DNA of 64,000 nt. It comes from Styela clava (taxonomy: Eukaryota). The position numbers were made by a program, and so were the translations under genes. The number at the start of each line of letters is the position of its first letter. Within the stretch, counting starts at the first letter, position 1. The stretch is from NCBI RefSeq assembly GCF_964204865.1, contig NC_135256.1, positions 8,928,001 through 8,992,000 on the forward strand, in the 5' to 3' direction. The notes beneath the pieces are model-generated. The model was not told the DNA's origin. It was given only the letters and a program-made list of their open reading frames with translations, and did no database searches. Of the stretch, positions 331-62,740 are shown piece by piece.

Positions 331-3086
331 CAGAAACAAATATATTACAGACCAAATAAGAAGACAAATTATAGATTATAGTGTTTTTTATTGAGATGAA
401 TGAGCCTGGTGTTCTTCAGAGAATTTTCTATTATATCTAAAATTACCTCGTTTACTGATGGAAAGGCGATTTCGTTTTGATAGCAATAGTAGTATACAAA
501 CAGAATACTCTTTATATCAGGATATAACTGAGAAGAGATACAATTGATATTGTGGGACGACTTAGAGTCTTAGATTTATCTATAAAACAATATGCAAAGA
601 CTTTTAGCTCTTGTGCTTTTGATTACCATCTTGCAAGAACTTTCTAGTGCCGAAGGTAATATCACATGCAACACGTTTTTAATAGCTTCTAGCTGATGTT
701 TATTTATAAAGGATGCACGCATTAGTACCAGTCGAAAATCTAGATATAATATAACCAGTAGCGTAGTTTGGAAGTCAGTATATATATGGCTTCTAGAGAT
801 ACGCGTAGGTTTGAAATGGCCAAATCACCACGCTGTAGAATTTGCATTGGTCAGTACACAAGCCAACACAGCATGATAAATACACACATCAAGTAAGATT
901 TCATTTCAGAATCATGTGGGGTACAGCATATCATTGAGTCGTCAATAAGTGGAAGAATTGTTGGCGGCAGTGAAGCTGCTCCTGGTGCCTGGCCATGGCA
1001 AGCAATGCTCGTAGAATATTACCAGGATCTCGATGAATTTGGTTTTGTATGTGGCGGCACATTAATAAAAACGCAATGGGTATTGACGGCAGCACATTGT
1101 ATAAATAGGTAAGTAAGTATGCTAAAATATAAATTAGCTAGACTCATAAATTTTCACAAGATTACTTTTAATGCATGTATGATGTATTCAGATTTGATCA
1201 ATTATGGTCATTTCCAATCTCAAAGGCTTTTATTCCCTGCTACACGTAATCCGCACTTCAGTTCTTCTCATTTTAAACTAGATATGAAGCTGGCGGTATT
1301 GATGCATGTAAAGGAGACAGTGGTGGTCCTTTGGTTTGTCGGTCAAGTAAAGATCAACCATTTGTACTTCGTGGCATAACAAGTTTTGGTGATAATTGTG
1401 CTTTAGCACAGAGACCTGGTGTTTATACGAATGCTACGCAGTTTATCGACTGGATTTAACAAGTAACCACAAACAATGGGAATATTAATAGAGAAGGTAA
1501 ACAAATGAATCGTGAATACAAAACTTCATATCTTCGATCGTCTAATAAAAGATTTATATTTTCTGCTGTAAAATCAGGATTTCCGCCAAACATTGACTAC
1601 GAAAATAAACGCGTTACGTCGATAGTGATATTTTGCTAGTATATGATTTCAAGTTTTCGTATTTAAATTTTTATCTACGAACAAGTTTGTGGTATTTGAG
1701 ACATCGGATGACAGAGTATAAGATTGTATGCGATTTTGACTTCACTGAATTTTTTACACTTAAAAACATTTAATATTAATTTGTTCCCATTCACGATTCT
1801 TCTTCTCAAAATTGGCTGAATCATTTTTGCACTCGGATAAAAAAAAAATCATATTTGATCACTTTATACATATAAATATGTAACAGATGTATGTTTTTCA
1901 ACCACTTCAATCAAAAATTGTGAATCAACAGTAACGAAGAACGGAACAATACTCCGAAGTCCTGTAGTGGACACATCGACTTGGCTATATCCACCAGATT
2001 CAGTATATATTTGCTATTTCCTATAAATTTTTTTTGTACATGGTATATTGTCAAGATTTCATCAACAGAAGTTTGATAGTTAGATGCAATGGAAAATATT
2101 ATAAAATGTAGTAATAATACGTCTGTAGATGTGAAATCAAGTCGAAAAGTACAGTATTCTGTATATACTATATTCATATGATGCCTATATAAATGATTGC
2201 GTTCTTTCGAACGTGTTGACTTTAATTGAGAAACTCGGTTCTGCTTTCAGTTCAATACTATTCCAGGTTGTGTATCCTAATATTAATATCATATTTATAG
2301 TATTGCATTTGGAATATTCTCGCTGATGTTGGATGGGAAATCGAGATAGAATTCATTTGCTTCTTCCATTTACAATATTTTGCTCTGTATGATTTTTGTC
2401 GAGACTATGTTGAAATTAAATCAGTTAATACAGGTAAGGCGCATTTATATGGCGTGATTCTCCAATAACATCACCATGTTGTTAGTCAAGTTGGCAAAAT
2501 AATAGGAGGAGAATTATTGTGAAAGAGTGTGTAGTTTTGTATTAAGACTCACAGTTTATTGTAATATTACATACTTTGTTCGATATATTTATGGTATAGT
2601 TCAATTTTAAGCATCTCAAGAAGTTATTGCTGTTGACCACATAAATCAAAACGATCGAAATCAGCATATTTTGTTTTATTAAAGCTTCAATCTCTCTGAA
2701 CCTTCATTGTGTGTTTTCAGGGTACAGTAAAAGGTTTTGCGGATCAACAATGCCTGAACCAATTCATATTGAAAATAACGAGGCATCTGTCAGATTTTTG
2801 TCAGATGCTAGGTTGGAGTTATCTGGTTTCGTACTGCGAATAACCTTCGTCCCAGGACACCAAATGACAACAACTTCGGAAAAATCCACTGCGAAAACGA
2901 CTTCAACGGTATCGACTCAAAACGTTGACACATCCAAACCTACAACTAGATCAACCTTCATGCCCGAGACAACTTCTACAGCAGAATTCCAACATCATTT
3001 TACTTCTGAAGTCGCTGGAATGCCCCACACGACACTGGCTAAAACTACTCATGCTTTGTTAACCACAGATAAATCATCATCTACTT

Positions 3087-5567
3087 CAGGCCTGGGCAAG
3101 CTCCGGCCCGCGGGCCGCATCCGGCCCGCGGCAACGTTTCATCCGGCCCGCGAGCAGATTTCTAAATTAAGACACTTACATTTTTTATTTACATATAAAA
3201 TATACTTTGAGGGCAAATTTCATTAATGTAATAGAAATAAGCGTTTTGGTAGCTTTGTGTATTTTAGATTAGACCATGGCATAGTACCAACTGCTATCTG
3301 TAGTCATCTTTGTCGCAACGATCAGCGCTTGTTTTTGCACGTGATTACTGAACAGCAGAGTAATCGAAGCGTGAATTTTGCGCGCGTAATTTCGATGAGT
3401 CGCGTTTTGATTCGTGTCCCAATTAAGAAGGATACAGTTAGGCTAGTCAGCTCTGCGCTACTCAGCGTTTCAAATATTGTAGAAGTAGTGGTATGTAGAT
3501 AAATTGTTGAATTGCGCCCAGCTTTATTTTATTCTTTGTTTATCCTTTTATTTATGTAACTTGAACTGTAGCGTCAATTCTAAACCTGTGCTAGATCTAC
3601 AAAGTTGCAAAATGTCAGCCGAAAACAAGAAAAGAAAAGTTGACACAGAATGCAGAATTTTTAACAAAAGTTGGACAGCGAAGTATTTATTCACAGAAGT
3701 CGATGGGATAGCTGTTTGTCTGGTTTGCAAGGAGAAGGTCGCGGTTATTAAGGTTTTTAATTTAAAAAGGCATTTTGAGACAAAACATGCAAAAAAATAC
3801 AAAAATCTAAGTAATAATGAAATGGCGCAAACAGCGGAGAGTATGGTAGCAAAGCTCGAAAAACAGCAAAGTTTTTTCACACGACTCCATGCATCTAATG
3901 ATGCAGCTGTCATGGCCAGTTTCGTAATAGCTCACAAAATCGCTCAAAACAGCAAACCATTTTCTGAAGGGGAGTTCGTCAAAGAATGTTTAGTAGAGAC
4001 GGCAGCAATTGTTTGTCCTGATAAAACAGATGCTTTAAAACAAGTTCCGCTATCGAGAAGAACTGTCACCAGAAGGGTTGAGTGTATCGCAGGAGATTTA
4101 AGAGATCAGTTGCTACATTATGTCAAACAATTTGACTTCTTCACTTTAGCGTTAGACGAGAGTTGTGATGTACGCGACACTGCTCAGTTGCTTATTTTCG
4201 TTCGTGGAATTACTTGTGATTTCAAAATTACTGAAGAAATAGCTGCTATAAGACCAATGAAAGGAACAACAACAGGTGCAGATATTTTTAGCGAGGTAGA
4301 TGCATCCATGGATAAGTTGGGACTTAAATGGGAAAAATTGGCGGGAGTGACGACAGATGAGTGCCCAAATCTTACAGGAAAAAATGTGGGATTGTTGAAG
4401 CGCATGAAAGACAGAGTTAATGAAATTGACCCAAAGCAGCAGTTAGTGTTTTTACATTGTATCATACATCAACAGGTATTGTGCAAGTCAGTGCTAAAAA
4501 TAAGCCATGTCACTGATGTTGTTACAAAACTAGTTAACTTCATCAGGTCTCGAGCACTAAATCACAGACAGTTTATTTCCCTGTTGGAAGAGCAAGAAAA
4601 TGAGCACACTGACATAGGATATCATACAACTGTGAGATGGCTCAGTTTAGGCAAAATACTGAAGCGAGTTTGGGACTTGCAGCAGGAGATTCGAGAATTC
4701 TGTCAAACAAAGAACAAGGATATTCCGCAGCTTTCAGATAAGAAATGGTTATCTGATTTTGCTTTTGTTGTTGATGTCACTGCTCTATTGAATGAGTTGA
4801 ATTGCAAACTCCAAAGTAAAAAACTGTTTGTACATAATATGCACAGCTTGGTAAAATCGTTCATAACGAAATTGCAGTTTCTTTCACGCCAATTACAGAA
4901 CAATAATCTCGCTCATTTTCCCACACGCAACACAGCTACCACATCTGCAAATGATTTTCAAAAGTACTCTACAATGCTAGATGCACTGCATGCTGAATTT
5001 TTAAGACGATTTGAAGATTTCCGATTAATTGAAAATAAAATGAGTATGGTCTCTTCTCCTTTCACCAGTAACGTGGAAAACATACCATCTGATGCACAAC
5101 TCGAGCTTATTGATTTGCAGTGTGACACTTTACTTCAGGAAAAATTTAAATCATCTGAAATTCTGGATTTTTATTCCTCTCTAAATAAAAAAAAGTTTTC
5201 CCAACATAAGGAGACATGCTCAAAAGATGCTAGTTCTTTTCGGATCCACTTATATTTGCGAGCAAACCTTCTCAGTAATGAATTTTACCAAATCGAAATT
5301 TCGGTCGTCTCTCACCGATGAACATCTTTCTGATTTGCTGAGAATATCTACGTCTGTCATTGAACCCGACATTCAAGGACTTGTTAAGGCGCAGCAGAGC
5401 ATACACACGTCTCATTAAAAATAACAATTGTATTAGATTTTGTTTCATTCAATTGTGTAATAAAATACAATAAAAAACGCAATGTGGGTTGACTCAAATT
5501 AGTCCGGCCCGCCACTGCATTTTGATTTGCAATGTGGCCCTCGAGCAAAAATAATTGCCCAGCCCTG
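3087..5567 (+). mobile_element. Full-length hAT DNA transposon (Buster/SPIN/GTF2IRD2-like), 2481 bp
   Basis: TIRs CAGGCCTGGGCAA and TTGCCCAGCCCTG (12/13 match). Perfect 8-bp TSD ATCTACTT at 3079-3086 and 5568-5575. Subterminal CCGGCCCGC repeats. Encodes a transposase. Confidence 0.97.
3612..5418 (+). pseudogene. hAT transposase (GTF2IRD2/SPIN-like) with a single +1 frameshift near 5187-5200
   Basis: ATG at 3612 (MSAENKKRKVD). BED-like zinc finger (CLVC..HFETKH), LALDES, VTTD, HCIIH and VRWLS motifs. The C-terminal dimerisation region FGSTYICEQTFS..RSSL continues in the +1 frame (ORF 5227-5418) after AAAAAAAAGTTTTCCC. Confidence 0.92.
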
Positions 5568-62400: not shown

Positions 62401-62740
62401 GTCACAGTTTAATTGAATAGGGCTATGAGAAACAGTATCTGGGAACAAAGAATTGTTTGACAAAAATAGAAATCAAGTTGGCTAGAGTAAATTCTCATAA
62501 GTAATGAATATGCATCCATTTCAAAGCTACCGATTAAGTTAGAGCAATATTCCAATAAATAGATGAGAATTTACTAGAAAGAAGTCTAATAAAGACAGAA
62601 CTGAATGTTGGAAAAACCGTGAAGATAAAATATACCCCTGTACCTTCGTTTGTAAATCTTGGTGTAGCTTGGACTTCGTCAGAAGCTACATGATACAGTG
62701 TACTGTATAACAGGAACGCTCTGATTATAACACTATTCAT
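59500..62740 (-). CDS. GPI-type trypsin-like serine protease without CUB (family member E, about 320 aa; prostasin/testisin-like architecture)
   Basis: Exons (-): 62740-62644 (signal), 62270-62078 (CG..SR|VVNG..WPWQ..AAHC), 61695-61589, 61034-60873 (NDICLLRL), 60541-60424, 59785-59500 ([47 protein letters not shown] stop). Total 963 nt in frame. Confidence 0.9.

Follow-up and report, generated by a model that had tools for sequence, protein, structure and literature searches.

An array of trypsin-like protease genes with optional CUB modules and predicted surface tethers in the ascidian Styela clava

Proacrosin of the ascidian Halocynthia roretzi (HrProacrosin) is described as comprising a signal peptide, a light and a heavy chain, and two CUB domains, and HrOvochymase as a polyprotease with five CUB domains (PMC9265791). 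The protease-then-CUB order that a preliminary description of the present locus had attributed to ascidian proacrosin and to oviductin/ovochymase agrees with the relevant part of that source, and the same order is found in vertebrate ovochymase and oviductin (PMC9265791). Proteins in which an S1 peptidase is joined to a CUB domain are also listed, as fragments, among cnidarian skeletal matrix proteins (PMC4043741). The GPI-anchored serine proteases prostasin (PRSS8) and testisin (PRSS21) consist of a signal peptide, a short propeptide with a tethering Cys, a trypsin-like S1A domain, and a hydrophobic end; the type II transmembrane serine proteases matriptase and enteropeptidase, as well as MASP/C1r/C1s, contain CUB and trypsin-like domains and act at surfaces or in cascades.

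This study analyzed a 64,000-nucleotide stretch of the Styela clava genome (C8:8928001-8992000, hereafter the window); its genes A, B, D, and E are of the S1 trypsin-like type, and C is CUB-only. All five genes of the preliminary description were recovered in place through exon models (Table 1), and the exons of B, C, D, and E exactly tiled the RefSeq proteins P0379 (XP_039251581.2, 609 aa), P0376 (XP_039251643.2, 209 aa), P0380 (XP_039251580.2, 615 aa), and P0378 (XP_039251613.2, 320 aa), respectively. AG/GT bounded every intron in these four models. The intact genes had already been modelled by RefSeq under automatic names only, B and D formerly as ovochymase-like. The genes are thus real, but the count of five is an effect of the window because the array extends beyond both edges: at least five further protease genes (A', F, G, H, and I) flank it, and the array on C8 comprises at least 12 genes and relics. 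In a profile search with the protease exon P4, the best 9 of 105 matches all lay at C8:8915232-9021531, and the CUB-exon profile gave 14 matches, 11 of them on C8 between 8.89 and 9.13 Mb. Also outside the window is X, a catalytically dead protease with four CUB domains, which lacks R-IVGG and GDSGGP, has Gln in place of His57, and has no complete catalytic triad. Gene J, near the window, carries the CUB-stalk-tail cassette of the family behind a CAP-like piece (profile match with E 0.042, under the cut-off). The explanation that we consider likely overall is that the window is the middle of a tandem array of ascidian S1A genes at approximately 8.89 to 9.13 Mb of C8, which encodes modular surface zymogens and in which A has decayed.

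Table 1. Coordinates of genes, exons, and lesions within the window
Feature	Position	Strand	Basis
Gene A, pseudogene: signal exon, P1 and P4 only, CUB, mucin, tail	592..6741	+	Exon model, comparison with A'
Gene A exons	592-655, 910-1108, 1282-1496, 1887-2002, 2301-2433, 2721-3086, 5576-6741	+	
In-frame TAA in A, right after FIDWI	1457..1459	+	A' has E at this codon
hAT-type transposon within the mucin exon of A	3087..5567	+	Target duplication, inverted ends, empty site in A'
Gene B: signal exon, extra N-terminal exon, protease, CUB, 101-aa stalk with 4 Cys, hydrophobic tail	8208..18519	-	
Gene B exons	18519-18357, 17906-17781, 16414-16198, 16031-15928, 15857-15693, 14708-14591, 14377-14184, 14109-13988, 13554-13419, 8689-8208	-	
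Exon P3 of B, 118 nt	14591..14708	-	Exon model
Gene C: signal exon, divergent CUB, 31-aa stalk, hydrophobic tail, without protease	29316..30828	-	
Gene C exons	30828-30735, 30568-30447, 29726-29316	-	
Gene D: signal exon, protease, 4-Cys CUB, 165-aa mucin stalk, weak hydrophobic tail	34516..40718	-	
Gene D exons	40718-40646, 39204-39000, 38548-38439, 38203-38045, 37851-37734, 37336-37125, 36454-36330, 35638-35512, 35231-34516	-	
Exon P3 of D, 118 nt	37734..37851	-	Exon model and RNA contig
Gene E: signal exon, protease, 13-residue linker, hydrophobic tail, without CUB	59503..62740	-	
Gene E exons	62740-62644, 62270-62078, 61695-61589, 61034-60873, 60541-60424, 59785-59503	-	
Exon P3 of E, 118 nt	60424..60541	-	Exon model

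The protease domains were scanned against Pfam Trypsin (PF00089, cut-off 20.6 bits), with earlier RefSeq versions used for B (P0271 = XP_039251581.1, a few residues different), D (P0270), and E (P0148 = XP_039251613.1). The scores were 185.7 bits for B (E 1.4e-54), 197.9 for D, 226.4 for E (E 5e-67), and 204.5 for I, and the two remaining protease exons of A scored 49.9 and 63.1 bits. The motifs TAAHC, D(I/V)(A/C)L, and GDSGGP make up a complete triad (His57, Asp102, and Ser195) in B, D, and E. As the preliminary description had proposed, all four window proteases possess both Asp189, at the S1 position, and an activation site, which reads R-IVGG, R-IVNG, or R-VVNG with the Arg before the cleavage point. 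GDSGGP is likewise present in all four, and D-x-C-x-G-D-S-G-G-P, SFG, and PGVY are invariant among them, a pattern that predicts trypsin-like specificity; we take the S1-pocket residues to be Asp189, Gly216, and Gly226. The motifs are consistent with the proposal that the intact protease genes encode secreted zymogens of this specificity.

The CUB domains of B, D, and I, with B and D again represented by P0271 and P0270, scored 55.9 (E 6.4e-15), 39.6, and 43.8 bits against PF00431 (cut-off 21.4 bits), so that both trypsin and CUB exceeded their cut-offs in these three genes; the last CUB exon of A alone scored 24.0 bits. The CUB domain of B matched those of cubilin, PCPE-1, and MASP with E down to 8.7e-20, and C1s CUB domains were also matched. 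A family-specific Cys pattern, claimed earlier for the CUB domains, was found in A, B, C, D, and I as a six-Cys variant with an extra N-terminal Cys and a Cys in F-x-C-x-F, although the 4-Cys CUB domain of D lacks both Cys of the canonical first disulfide. Gene C reached only 13.1 bits (E 0.12) in Pfam. Nevertheless, its structure model, of moderate confidence (mean pLDDT 64.3), adopted the CUB beta-sandwich fold, and all eight matches of a fold search at E <= 0.001 were CUB-domain chains (including Neto2, Kremen, and C1r CUB2), with TM-scores of 0.58-0.67 against single CUB domains, normalised to the target. Protein-language-model features of C pointed to CUB clusters (0.90-0.92), and C aligned with the CUB domains of other family members. 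On this evidence, C is a CUB-only gene.

The exon structures support the claim that the genes are paralogs of modular, phase-compatible build. Exon P3 is 118 nt long in B, D, and E, as had been noted, and its counterparts beyond the window, in A', F, G, H, and I, have the same length. The phases at the exon ends are common to the family (signal 1, P1 2, P1b 1, P2 1, P3 2, P4 1, C1 0, and C2 1); however, the exon layout is shared less completely than had been thought, with CUB parts 2 and 3 uninterrupted by an intron in C, an additional phase 1-1 exon (17906-17781) in B, and exons P1b to P3 missing from A. Introns of phase 1 stand at every module boundary (signal exon, extra exon of B, protease block of five exons, and CUB block), an arrangement that allows whole blocks to drop out or multiply without a shift of frame. 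The array probably grew by tandem and segmental duplication, and such in-frame loss or gain of blocks would have yielded the CUB-only C, the protease-only E, F, G, and H, and X with its dead protease and four CUB domains. RNA evidence for the models was confined to D, and to one of three RNA-type runs (X2), in which a single 1,819-nt contig (39139 to 34403) joined the last eight of the nine exons of D as predicted; the signal exon lay outside the stretch compared with RNA contigs. Six of the seven junctions were recorded as joints ending in CT..AC; the seventh, P3/P4, was also seen. The other two RNA-type runs (X1 and X9) gave short pieces near the 3' end of D only, and the DNA run X10 contained none of the seven junctions.

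Trees were built from rows picked by hand from 376 stored proteins, with multi-protease proteins and human entries left out. In the 30-row tree, a starred clade of 8 rows (97/95) contained B, D, E, H, and I; it was nested in a starred 12-row clade (98/92) with P0292 and P0352 of Ciona and P0261 and P0246 of Clavelina, apart from the vertebrate prostasin/testisin (98/99) and acrosin/TMPRSS12 (96/87) clades. A 32-row tree gave the same picture. The members grouped together, as expected, but not as a Styela-exclusive group: P0181, P0215, and P0219 nested among the five Styela genes in the 30-row tree, and an AU test rejected these five as an exclusive clade (p 0.0079). The nesting implies that part of the diversity predates Styela clava or that the three proteins come from close relatives. 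On these trees, the proteases are a clade of trypsin-like S1A enzymes shared among ascidians and not specific to Styela. P0292 of Ciona intestinalis ("coagulation factor XI-like", 428 aa) resembles the Styela genes in having a signal peptide, trypsin, CUB, a short stalk, and a hydrophobic end, but lacks the extra Cys pair of the Styela CUB domains. P0261 of Clavelina ("trypsin-1-like", 318 aa), in the same starred clade, combines trypsin with a hydrophobic end.

Gene A had been described as broken, and this is borne out by an in-frame TAA codon, the loss of a 2.6-kb exon block, and a hAT insertion. Exons P1b, P2, and P3 are absent, with a 173-nt intron where A' has 2.64 kb, and their absence removes Asp102 and leaves the catalytic triad incomplete. 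The insertion is flanked by an 8-bp target duplication (3079-3086 and 5568-5575), has CAGG..CCTG inverted ends, and contains a 605-aa ORF (3504-5321) matching a Spin-doc zinc finger. Window positions 29-8810 are 94-96% identical to the A' block (C8:8911099-8920371), and A is a recent decayed duplicate of the intact A' just outside the window. The module combinations listed earlier stand, with stalks ranging from 13 to about 500 residues, except that the broken A has an intact twin in A'. A relic of B adjoins A', indicating that after duplication of one segment its two copies retained different genes. An assembly error at the A/A' pair is possible in principle.

Ascidians are highly polymorphic and collinearity between the two blocks extends over about 9 kb, as would be expected if A/A' (and B with its relic) were two haplotypes of one locus misassembled side by side, with A as a null allele. 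We consider this very improbable: identity falls from the 94-96% of the best blocks to 84-91% further on, with rearranged pieces, dS is about 0.05, and each block has lost a different gene, whereas differences between runs in the region of D amount to approximately 1% (15 other letters in 1,819). The nature of the C-terminal ends was weighed in 14 tails by simple rules. All five window genes end in an uncharged hydrophobic stretch followed by 0 to 11 residues, as had been claimed; the GPI-type rules were fitted by A, B, C, F, G, I, and Ciona P0292 but poorly by D and E, the tail of D being the weakest (mean hydropathy 1.3, several His, and 9 residues beyond) and that of E being interrupted by a Gln. 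These two atypical tails would suit single-pass or tail-type membrane anchors, or ends that are removed to release secreted proteins, for example into the gut, blood, or tunic; moreover, the hydrophobic end of prostasin was at first taken for a membrane-spanning segment, which we counted in favor of such anchors. However, the stretch is followed by 0 or 1 residue in 10 of the 14 tails and by a basic cytoplasmic stretch in none, small residues lie 6-14 residues upstream in 13, and Ciona P0292, Clavelina P0261, and P0181 share this design. A non-GPI end is rather unlikely, and the C-terminal ends are probably GPI attachment signals, as judged by these simple rules.

Each intact member would thus begin with a cleavable signal peptide and a short propeptide whose one Cys probably stays disulfide-tethered to the PxCLP Cys. 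A protease with the Arg-(I/V)V(G/N)G site, His57, Asp102, Ser195, and Asp189 would follow and then, optionally, one CUB domain of the six-Cys variant and a Ser/Thr/Pro-rich stalk, with the putative GPI signal at the very C-terminus. With this architecture, the proteins most likely reside as zymogens on the outer cell surface, where some of the trypsin-like enzymes would carry a binding module and a sugar-coated stalk and others would lack them. Activated by cleavage at the Arg, they would hydrolyze bonds after Arg or Lys close to the membrane; the CUB domain may bind ligands or substrates, and the stalk would set the reach.

The preliminary description proposed a surface cascade, for example in fertilisation or at an epithelial or tunic surface, in which Arg-specific proteases standing at different distances from the membrane activate each other and C serves as a receptor, cofactor, or decoy; X would be a further candidate for that role. 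All intact members possess an Arg at the activation site together with Asp189, their stalks are graded in length, and the noncatalytic C and X exist; yet most S1A zymogens are activated at an Arg, so that this residue is no pointer to mutual activation, and tandem paralogs often diverge to separate tissues instead of cooperating, which makes this reading quite improbable. A role as gamete proteins that, like ascidian proacrosin and ovochymase, bind egg-coat components in fertilisation or egg-coat maturation is somewhat less improbable but still unlikely. It accords with the protease-then-CUB order of HrProacrosin and HrOvochymase (PMC9265791), with the junction in J of the subthreshold CAP-like piece to the family CUB, stalk, and tail, and with RefSeq names that include ovochymase-like and acrosin-like. 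Those names are automatic, however; the Styela proteins have one CUB domain rather than two, the available portion of PMC9265791 mentions no C-terminal tail for proacrosin, and vertebrate acrosins form a separate clade in the 30-row tree. More speculatively, and with considerable doubt, the array may represent an ascidian-own family of membrane-tethered trypsins assembled from interchangeable phase-1 modules, whose Styela members cooperate in recognition, for example between sperm and egg coat or of self and non-self. Styela would then possess a surface toolkit comprising active enzymes held at a series of heights, the CUB-only C, the inactive protease X with its four CUB domains, and the CUB-stalk-tail cassette grafted onto a CAP/CRISP-like protein.

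The literature search found no paper describing this architecture, in keeping with its having been called undescribed. The best matches to E include prostasin-like, testisin-like, and PRSS27/33-like proteins, and the signal peptide, short propeptide with a putative tethering Cys, S1A domain, and hydrophobic end are shared with prostasin and testisin; these, however, lack CUB and mucin stalk, and the GPI anchor of the Styela proteins is a prediction. Membership of their clade was rejected, the two groups forming separate starred clades in both trees. The Styela genes also depart from the proacrosin/ovochymase architecture, with one CUB domain in A, B, D, and I and none in E to H; as far as the available descriptions in PMC9265791 extend, those proteins are further set apart by having no mucin stalk or hydrophobic end described. 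The cnidarian matrix proteins share the joining of an S1 peptidase to CUB, and the present RefSeq name of B follows them, but they belong to a skeletal matrix, are known only as fragments, and have no stalk or tail described. A type II transmembrane protease was rejected as a model: a propeptide comes directly after the short hydrophobic segments at the N-terminus, and the predicted anchor is C-terminal. Matriptase, enteropeptidase, and MASP/C1r/C1s carry their CUB domains N-terminal to the protease and their anchor, if any, at the N-terminus, whereas in the Styela proteins both the order and the predicted anchor are reversed.

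The window has a GC content of 33-42% and contains no N runs. Exons were modelled by combining paralogous exon cores with GT/AG sites and a tally of reading frames, and full-length analyses were run on database proteins. Six-frame scans recovered the four trypsin-exon sets and the CUB exons where the preliminary description had placed the genes; Pfam recognised both Trypsin and CUB on single exons. The RefSeq proteins of genes B, C, D, and E contained the inner peptide of each modelled exon at the expected place, and adjacent exon models of these genes were separated by one split codon, with AG and GT at every intron. 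The RefSeq names for the genes of the cluster are automatic. Positions, domain content, and exon phases are listed in the table.

The module boundaries are matched in phase. Because the signal exons, the extra exon of B, and the protease and CUB blocks all end in phase 1, every module boundary is of this phase. The earlier claim of shared intron positions and phases held for the phases and for protease exon P3, which has the same 118-nt length in B, D, and E and, outside the window, in A', F, G, H, and I. The one exception is in gene C, which lacks the intron between CUB parts 2 and 3; both parts lie within a single exon, and the intron positions are therefore not all common. The intronless hexokinase ORF lying between C and D may be a retrogene.

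Positions and features of the array, its shared exons, and its surroundings (plain numbers, window positions; C8, contig NC_135256.1; L003 and L008, fetched flank stretches; P1-P4, protease exons; C1-C3, CUB exons)
Feature	Position	Strand	Description
X	C8:8891995-8900910	-	protease homolog without R-IVGG or GDSGGP, Gln for His57; then four array-type CUBs, hydrophobic end
A'	C8:8912.2-8918.3 kb	+	intact protease, CUB, ~500-aa mucin, tail
B relic	C8:8919.8-8926.5 kb (8919759-8926543)	-	pieces L003 6759-7397, L008 3277-3543
A, B, C, D, E	window		between B relic and F
Gene B			XP_039251581.2 (P0379), 609 aa, same assembly
Gene C			XP_039251643.2 (P0376), 209 aa, same assembly
Gene D			XP_039251580.2 (P0380), 615 aa, same assembly
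Gene E			XP_039251613.2 (P0378), 320 aa, same assembly
F	C8:8992.6-8997.0 kb	-	protease, stalk, tail
F exon P2	C8:8993779-8994091	-	spread over two reading frames (frameshift or assembly error)
G	C8:9005.2-9008.75 kb	-	protease, 38-aa stalk, tail
H	C8:9013.4-9016.6 kb	-	protease, 38-aa stalk, tail; XP_077970592.1
I	C8:9019.3-9024.0 kb	-	protease, CUB, 44-aa stalk, tail; XP_039250222.2
J	C8:9125929-9128780	+	array-type CUB, acidic/mucin-like stalk, hydrophobic end, behind ORF pieces weakly CAP-like
Exon P1			activation site to TAAHC; end phase 2
Exon P1b			protease block; end phase 1
Exon P2			Asp102 and PxCLP Cys; end phase 1
Exon P3	B 14708-14591; D 37851-37734; E 60541-60424		constant 118 nt; end phase 2
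Exon P4			Asp189 and GDSGGP; end phase 1
Exon C1			CUB block; end phase 0
Exon C2			CUB block; end phase 1
Exon C3			CUB block, continuing into stalk and tail
B extra exon	17906-17781		end phase 1
C single exon	29726-29316		CUB parts 2 and 3
D signal exon	40718-40646		outside the aligned stretch
X2 contig over D, P1-P3 side	39139-39000, 38548-38439, 38203-38044, 37850-37734		spliced pieces
X2 contig, continued	37336-37125, 36454-36329, 35637-35511, 35230-34403		spliced pieces
Copied segment	29-8810		copies C8:8911099-8920371 at 94-96% identity
hAT-type element in A	3087-5567		2,481 bp; inverted ends CAGG...CCTG; open 605-aa ORF inside
Target duplication	3079-3086 / 5568-5575		8 bp
Empty site in A'	L003 ~4040-4050		no hAT-type element
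Carbonic anhydrase exon	27641-27937	+	eukaryotic type (Pfam E 4e-20)
Hexokinase ORF	31625-33040	+	471 aa, intronless; Pfam matches to the two hexokinase halves (E 1e-74 to 1e-79)
Repeat, D intron	36850-37250		depth 362-797 in the DNA-type run vs ~15 elsewhere
Short repeat, D intron 1	39650-39850		very abundant; many joints and loose ends
Tandem repeat	44480-48560		unit ~1.82 kb
Repeat copies	45261-46000, 47082-47800		same translation in all frames; third partial copy downstream, more diverged
Internal repeats	49332-50290	+	Leu/Phe/Ser codon-rich
Ankyrin-DHHC ORF	53468-55204	+	578 aa, intronless, between D and E; ankyrin repeats, DHHC palmitoyltransferase domain

Transcript evidence was obtained for D. 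The runs matching its region comprised nine RNA-type runs from three studies and four DNA-type runs from a fourth study, and three of the former (X1, X2, and X9) and one of the latter (X10) were aligned on window positions 34250-40249, covering the D region only. In X2, one 1,819-nt contig reproduced the predicted exons of D exactly, from inside P1 through past the stop codon; six joints with CT..AC ends were listed, and a seventh (P3 to P4) was visible in the table of pieces. The last eight of the nine exons of D are spliced as predicted. Since the contig runs past the stop codon, the mature message includes the tail of D. X1 and X9 yielded short pieces only, near the 3' end of D, and X10 was collinear with the genome (0 of 7 joints). 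In each of the four runs, the short repeat in intron 1 had a summed contig depth between 21,929 and 280,750.

We then compared the encoded domains. As had been described, all four window proteases carry Arg ahead of IVGG, IVNG, or VVNG, and Asp at the S1 position (Asp189) lies in an invariant D-x-C-x-G-D-S-G-G-P motif. The catalytic triad is complete in B, D, and E. Each propeptide contains one Cys, and exon P2 supplies the Cys of PxCLP, the usual propeptide partner in two-chain proteases, with which the propeptide Cys would pair. The intact protease genes encode predicted secreted-pathway zymogens with trypsin-like specificity. The distinctive CUB Cys pattern also stood: A, B, C, D, and I have an extra Cys ahead of the usual first one and a Cys in F-x-C-x-F. 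In the CUB of D, the two Cys that form the usual first disulfide are lost together, and the CUB of the Ciona protein P0292 has no extra Cys pair. The CUB of B matched those of cubilin, PCPE-1, MASP, and C1s (E down to 8.7e-20) and kept acidic residues aligning with those that we presume to be characteristic of calcium-binding CUBs.

Gene C fell below the Pfam CUB cut-off (13.1 vs 21.4 bits). A word-based search with its last exon matched only C itself (one of eight candidates), as did a search of the 377-Mb Styela clava genome. Because sequence searches retrieve C alone, the evidence for its CUB kinship comes from the alignment, the fold, and the exon phases: C aligns with the CUBs of A, B, D, and I, special Cys included, and in a structure search with its AlphaFold model (mean pLDDT 64.3), all eight matches at E <= 0.001 were CUB-domain chains. 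Protein-language-model features of C likewise point toward CUB clusters.

A hydrophobic uncharged stretch at or near the C-terminus was recovered in all five window genes, in agreement with the preliminary description. Tails were called by simple rules. No residue follows the stretch in A, B, and C, 9 follow it in D, and under the strict rule 11 follow it in E, because Gln interrupts the tail; the weakest tail is that of D (mean hydropathy 1.3). A similar hydrophobic end was observed in A', F, G, H, and I, in Ciona P0292, in Clavelina P0261, and in the protein P0181. A Ser/Thr/Pro-rich stalk separates the last domain from the tail and comprises 13 residues in E, 31 in C, 38 in F-H, 44 in I, 101 in B (with 4 Cys), 165 in D, and 502 in A'. 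The form of the tails suggests that they direct GPI anchoring.

Profile searches of the Styela genome extended the array beyond the window. The P4-exon profile gave at least 105 matches at E <= 1e-8 among the 150 scored of 216 candidates, and the top nine all lay on C8 at 8,915,232-9,021,531, four of them inside the window. The second-CUB-exon profile gave 14 matches at E <= 0.1, with 11 on C8 at 8.89-9.13 Mb. The order of the array was derived from exon-by-exon comparison of the fetched flanks. The two middle CUB units of X are near-identical, and their source is a 1.5-kb internal duplication. The RefSeq model P0016 (XP_077970517.1) appears to be a fusion of predictions from two tandem genes, with exons P3 and P4 of F attached to the protease of G. 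The CAP/CRISP-like ORF pieces of J were below the cut-off (E 0.042); as a lead only, J may recall the GPI-anchored CRISP proteins of ascidian sperm.

The pseudogene A and its intact counterpart A' lie in copies of one segment. Compared with A', A is missing 2.64 kb with exons P1b, P2, and P3; what is left at the deletion is a 173-nt intron whose splice sites are good, and the exon loss is in frame. Directly after FIDWI, the codon that reads Glu in A' is TAA in A, and A alone of the pair contains the hAT-type element. The domain exons of the two differ at 8 of 169 synonymous and 5 of 599 non-synonymous sites; with the mucin parts included, dS is ~0.05 and dN/dS 0.48, a ratio from which, with only 8 + 5 domain-exon differences, the time of A's death cannot be read. 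Beside A' lies a B relic, whose last CUB exon is internally deleted and lacks its stop and whose second CUB exon is present only as a piece; protease exons were not found in this stretch of the fetched flank (C8:8919759-8926543). A' is intact beside a relic of B, whereas A is decayed beside an intact B, and thus the two copies of the duplicated segment kept different genes. That the second copy is an assembly artefact fits poorly, as the A/A' segments diverge by 4-16%, compared with ~1% between runs in D.

To place the proteases among their relatives, we used database searches and protease-domain trees. Of the 6,448 candidates obtained with E as query, 5,150 reached E <= 1e-20; its best named matches, among the 120 listed, were prostasin-, acrosin-, TMPRSS9-, PRSS27/33-, and ovochymase-like (31-46% identity). 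A search with I brought up the Styela paralogs together with P0292 of Ciona ('coagulation factor XI-like', 428 aa), which consists of a signal peptide, trypsin, CUB, a short stalk, and a hydrophobic end. Clavelina P0261 and also P0181 have a trypsin-plus-tail build. The last-protease-exon profile was run against protein representatives, and the best 150 of 46,652 matches were dominated by multi-protease proteins because ranking was by whole-protein score; two of the six proteins fetched from these 150 belonged to this cluster, namely, P0148 (the model of E) and P0016.

The trees were built from hand-picked single-domain rows (32 and 30), with multi-protease proteins and human entries excluded. 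The Styela genes, the Ciona and Clavelina proteins, and P0181, P0215, and P0219 formed one starred clade (98/92, 30 rows), separate from prostasin/testisin/PRSS27/33 (98/99) and acrosin/TMPRSS12 (96/87). Membership in the prostasin/testisin clade or the vertebrate acrosin clade was rejected, both trees setting the Styela genes apart. Within the clade, B, D, and I clustered with P0215/P0219 (88/80), and E, H, and P0181 clustered together (91/84, unstarred; H with P0181, 100/99). This latter grouping argues against independent loss of the CUB in E-like genes. A strict Styela-only origin of the array was also rejected, since an exclusive clade of B, D, E, H, and I failed the AU test (p 0.0079); therefore, the split between protease-only and CUB-bearing genes probably predates Styela clava.

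The following working model is the most likely one. The hydrophobic ends would lead to GPI anchoring, so that the active enzymes would stand on the outer cell face, and the propeptide would still be tethered once the Arg site is cleaved. The CUB may bind ligand or substrate, and the glycosylated stalk would be a spacer fixing how far the enzyme stands from the membrane. Boundaries in phase 1 account for the in-frame origin of C, which has no protease block, of E-H, which have no CUB block, and likewise of X with four CUB blocks and B with one extra exon. As for function, one possibility is a gamete role that may resemble that of ascidian proacrosin/ovochymase (PMC9265791). The mutual activation proposed in the preliminary description, a putative scheme, is another possibility.

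Vertebrate epithelial and gamete biology is under the control of membrane-anchored serine proteases. To our knowledge, the anchored forms are either type II, with an N-terminal anchor and accessory domains ahead of the protease, or plain GPI forms that have no such domains. As judged from the encoded sequences, this locus probably represents a third anchored design, with protease, CUB, mucin stalk, and probable GPI signal in that order, and the design is shared between ascidian orders. Searches of article full texts, supplements aside, turned up no account of a tunicate family of tail-anchored trypsin-CUB-mucin proteins. The points of interest are the architecture itself and the clean modular exon evolution; the array illustrates clearly how exon blocks matched in phase allow tandem paralogs to drop, retain, or multiply domains. 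XP_039251580, XP_039251581, XP_039251613, XP_039251643, and their neighbours are candidates for studies of fertilisation, the tunic, or immunity in ascidians.

Among known systems, prostasin and testisin are GPI-anchored but have neither CUB nor stalk, and their clade differs from that of the Styela proteases. In type II proteases and in MASP/C1r/C1s, the CUB precedes the protease, unlike in the Styela genes. The 'CUB and peptidase domain-containing proteins' of corals are recorded as fragments (table in PMC4043741). Ascidian proacrosin and ovochymase have the protease before the CUB, with two or more CUBs, and the review that treats them describes no tail (PMC9265791).
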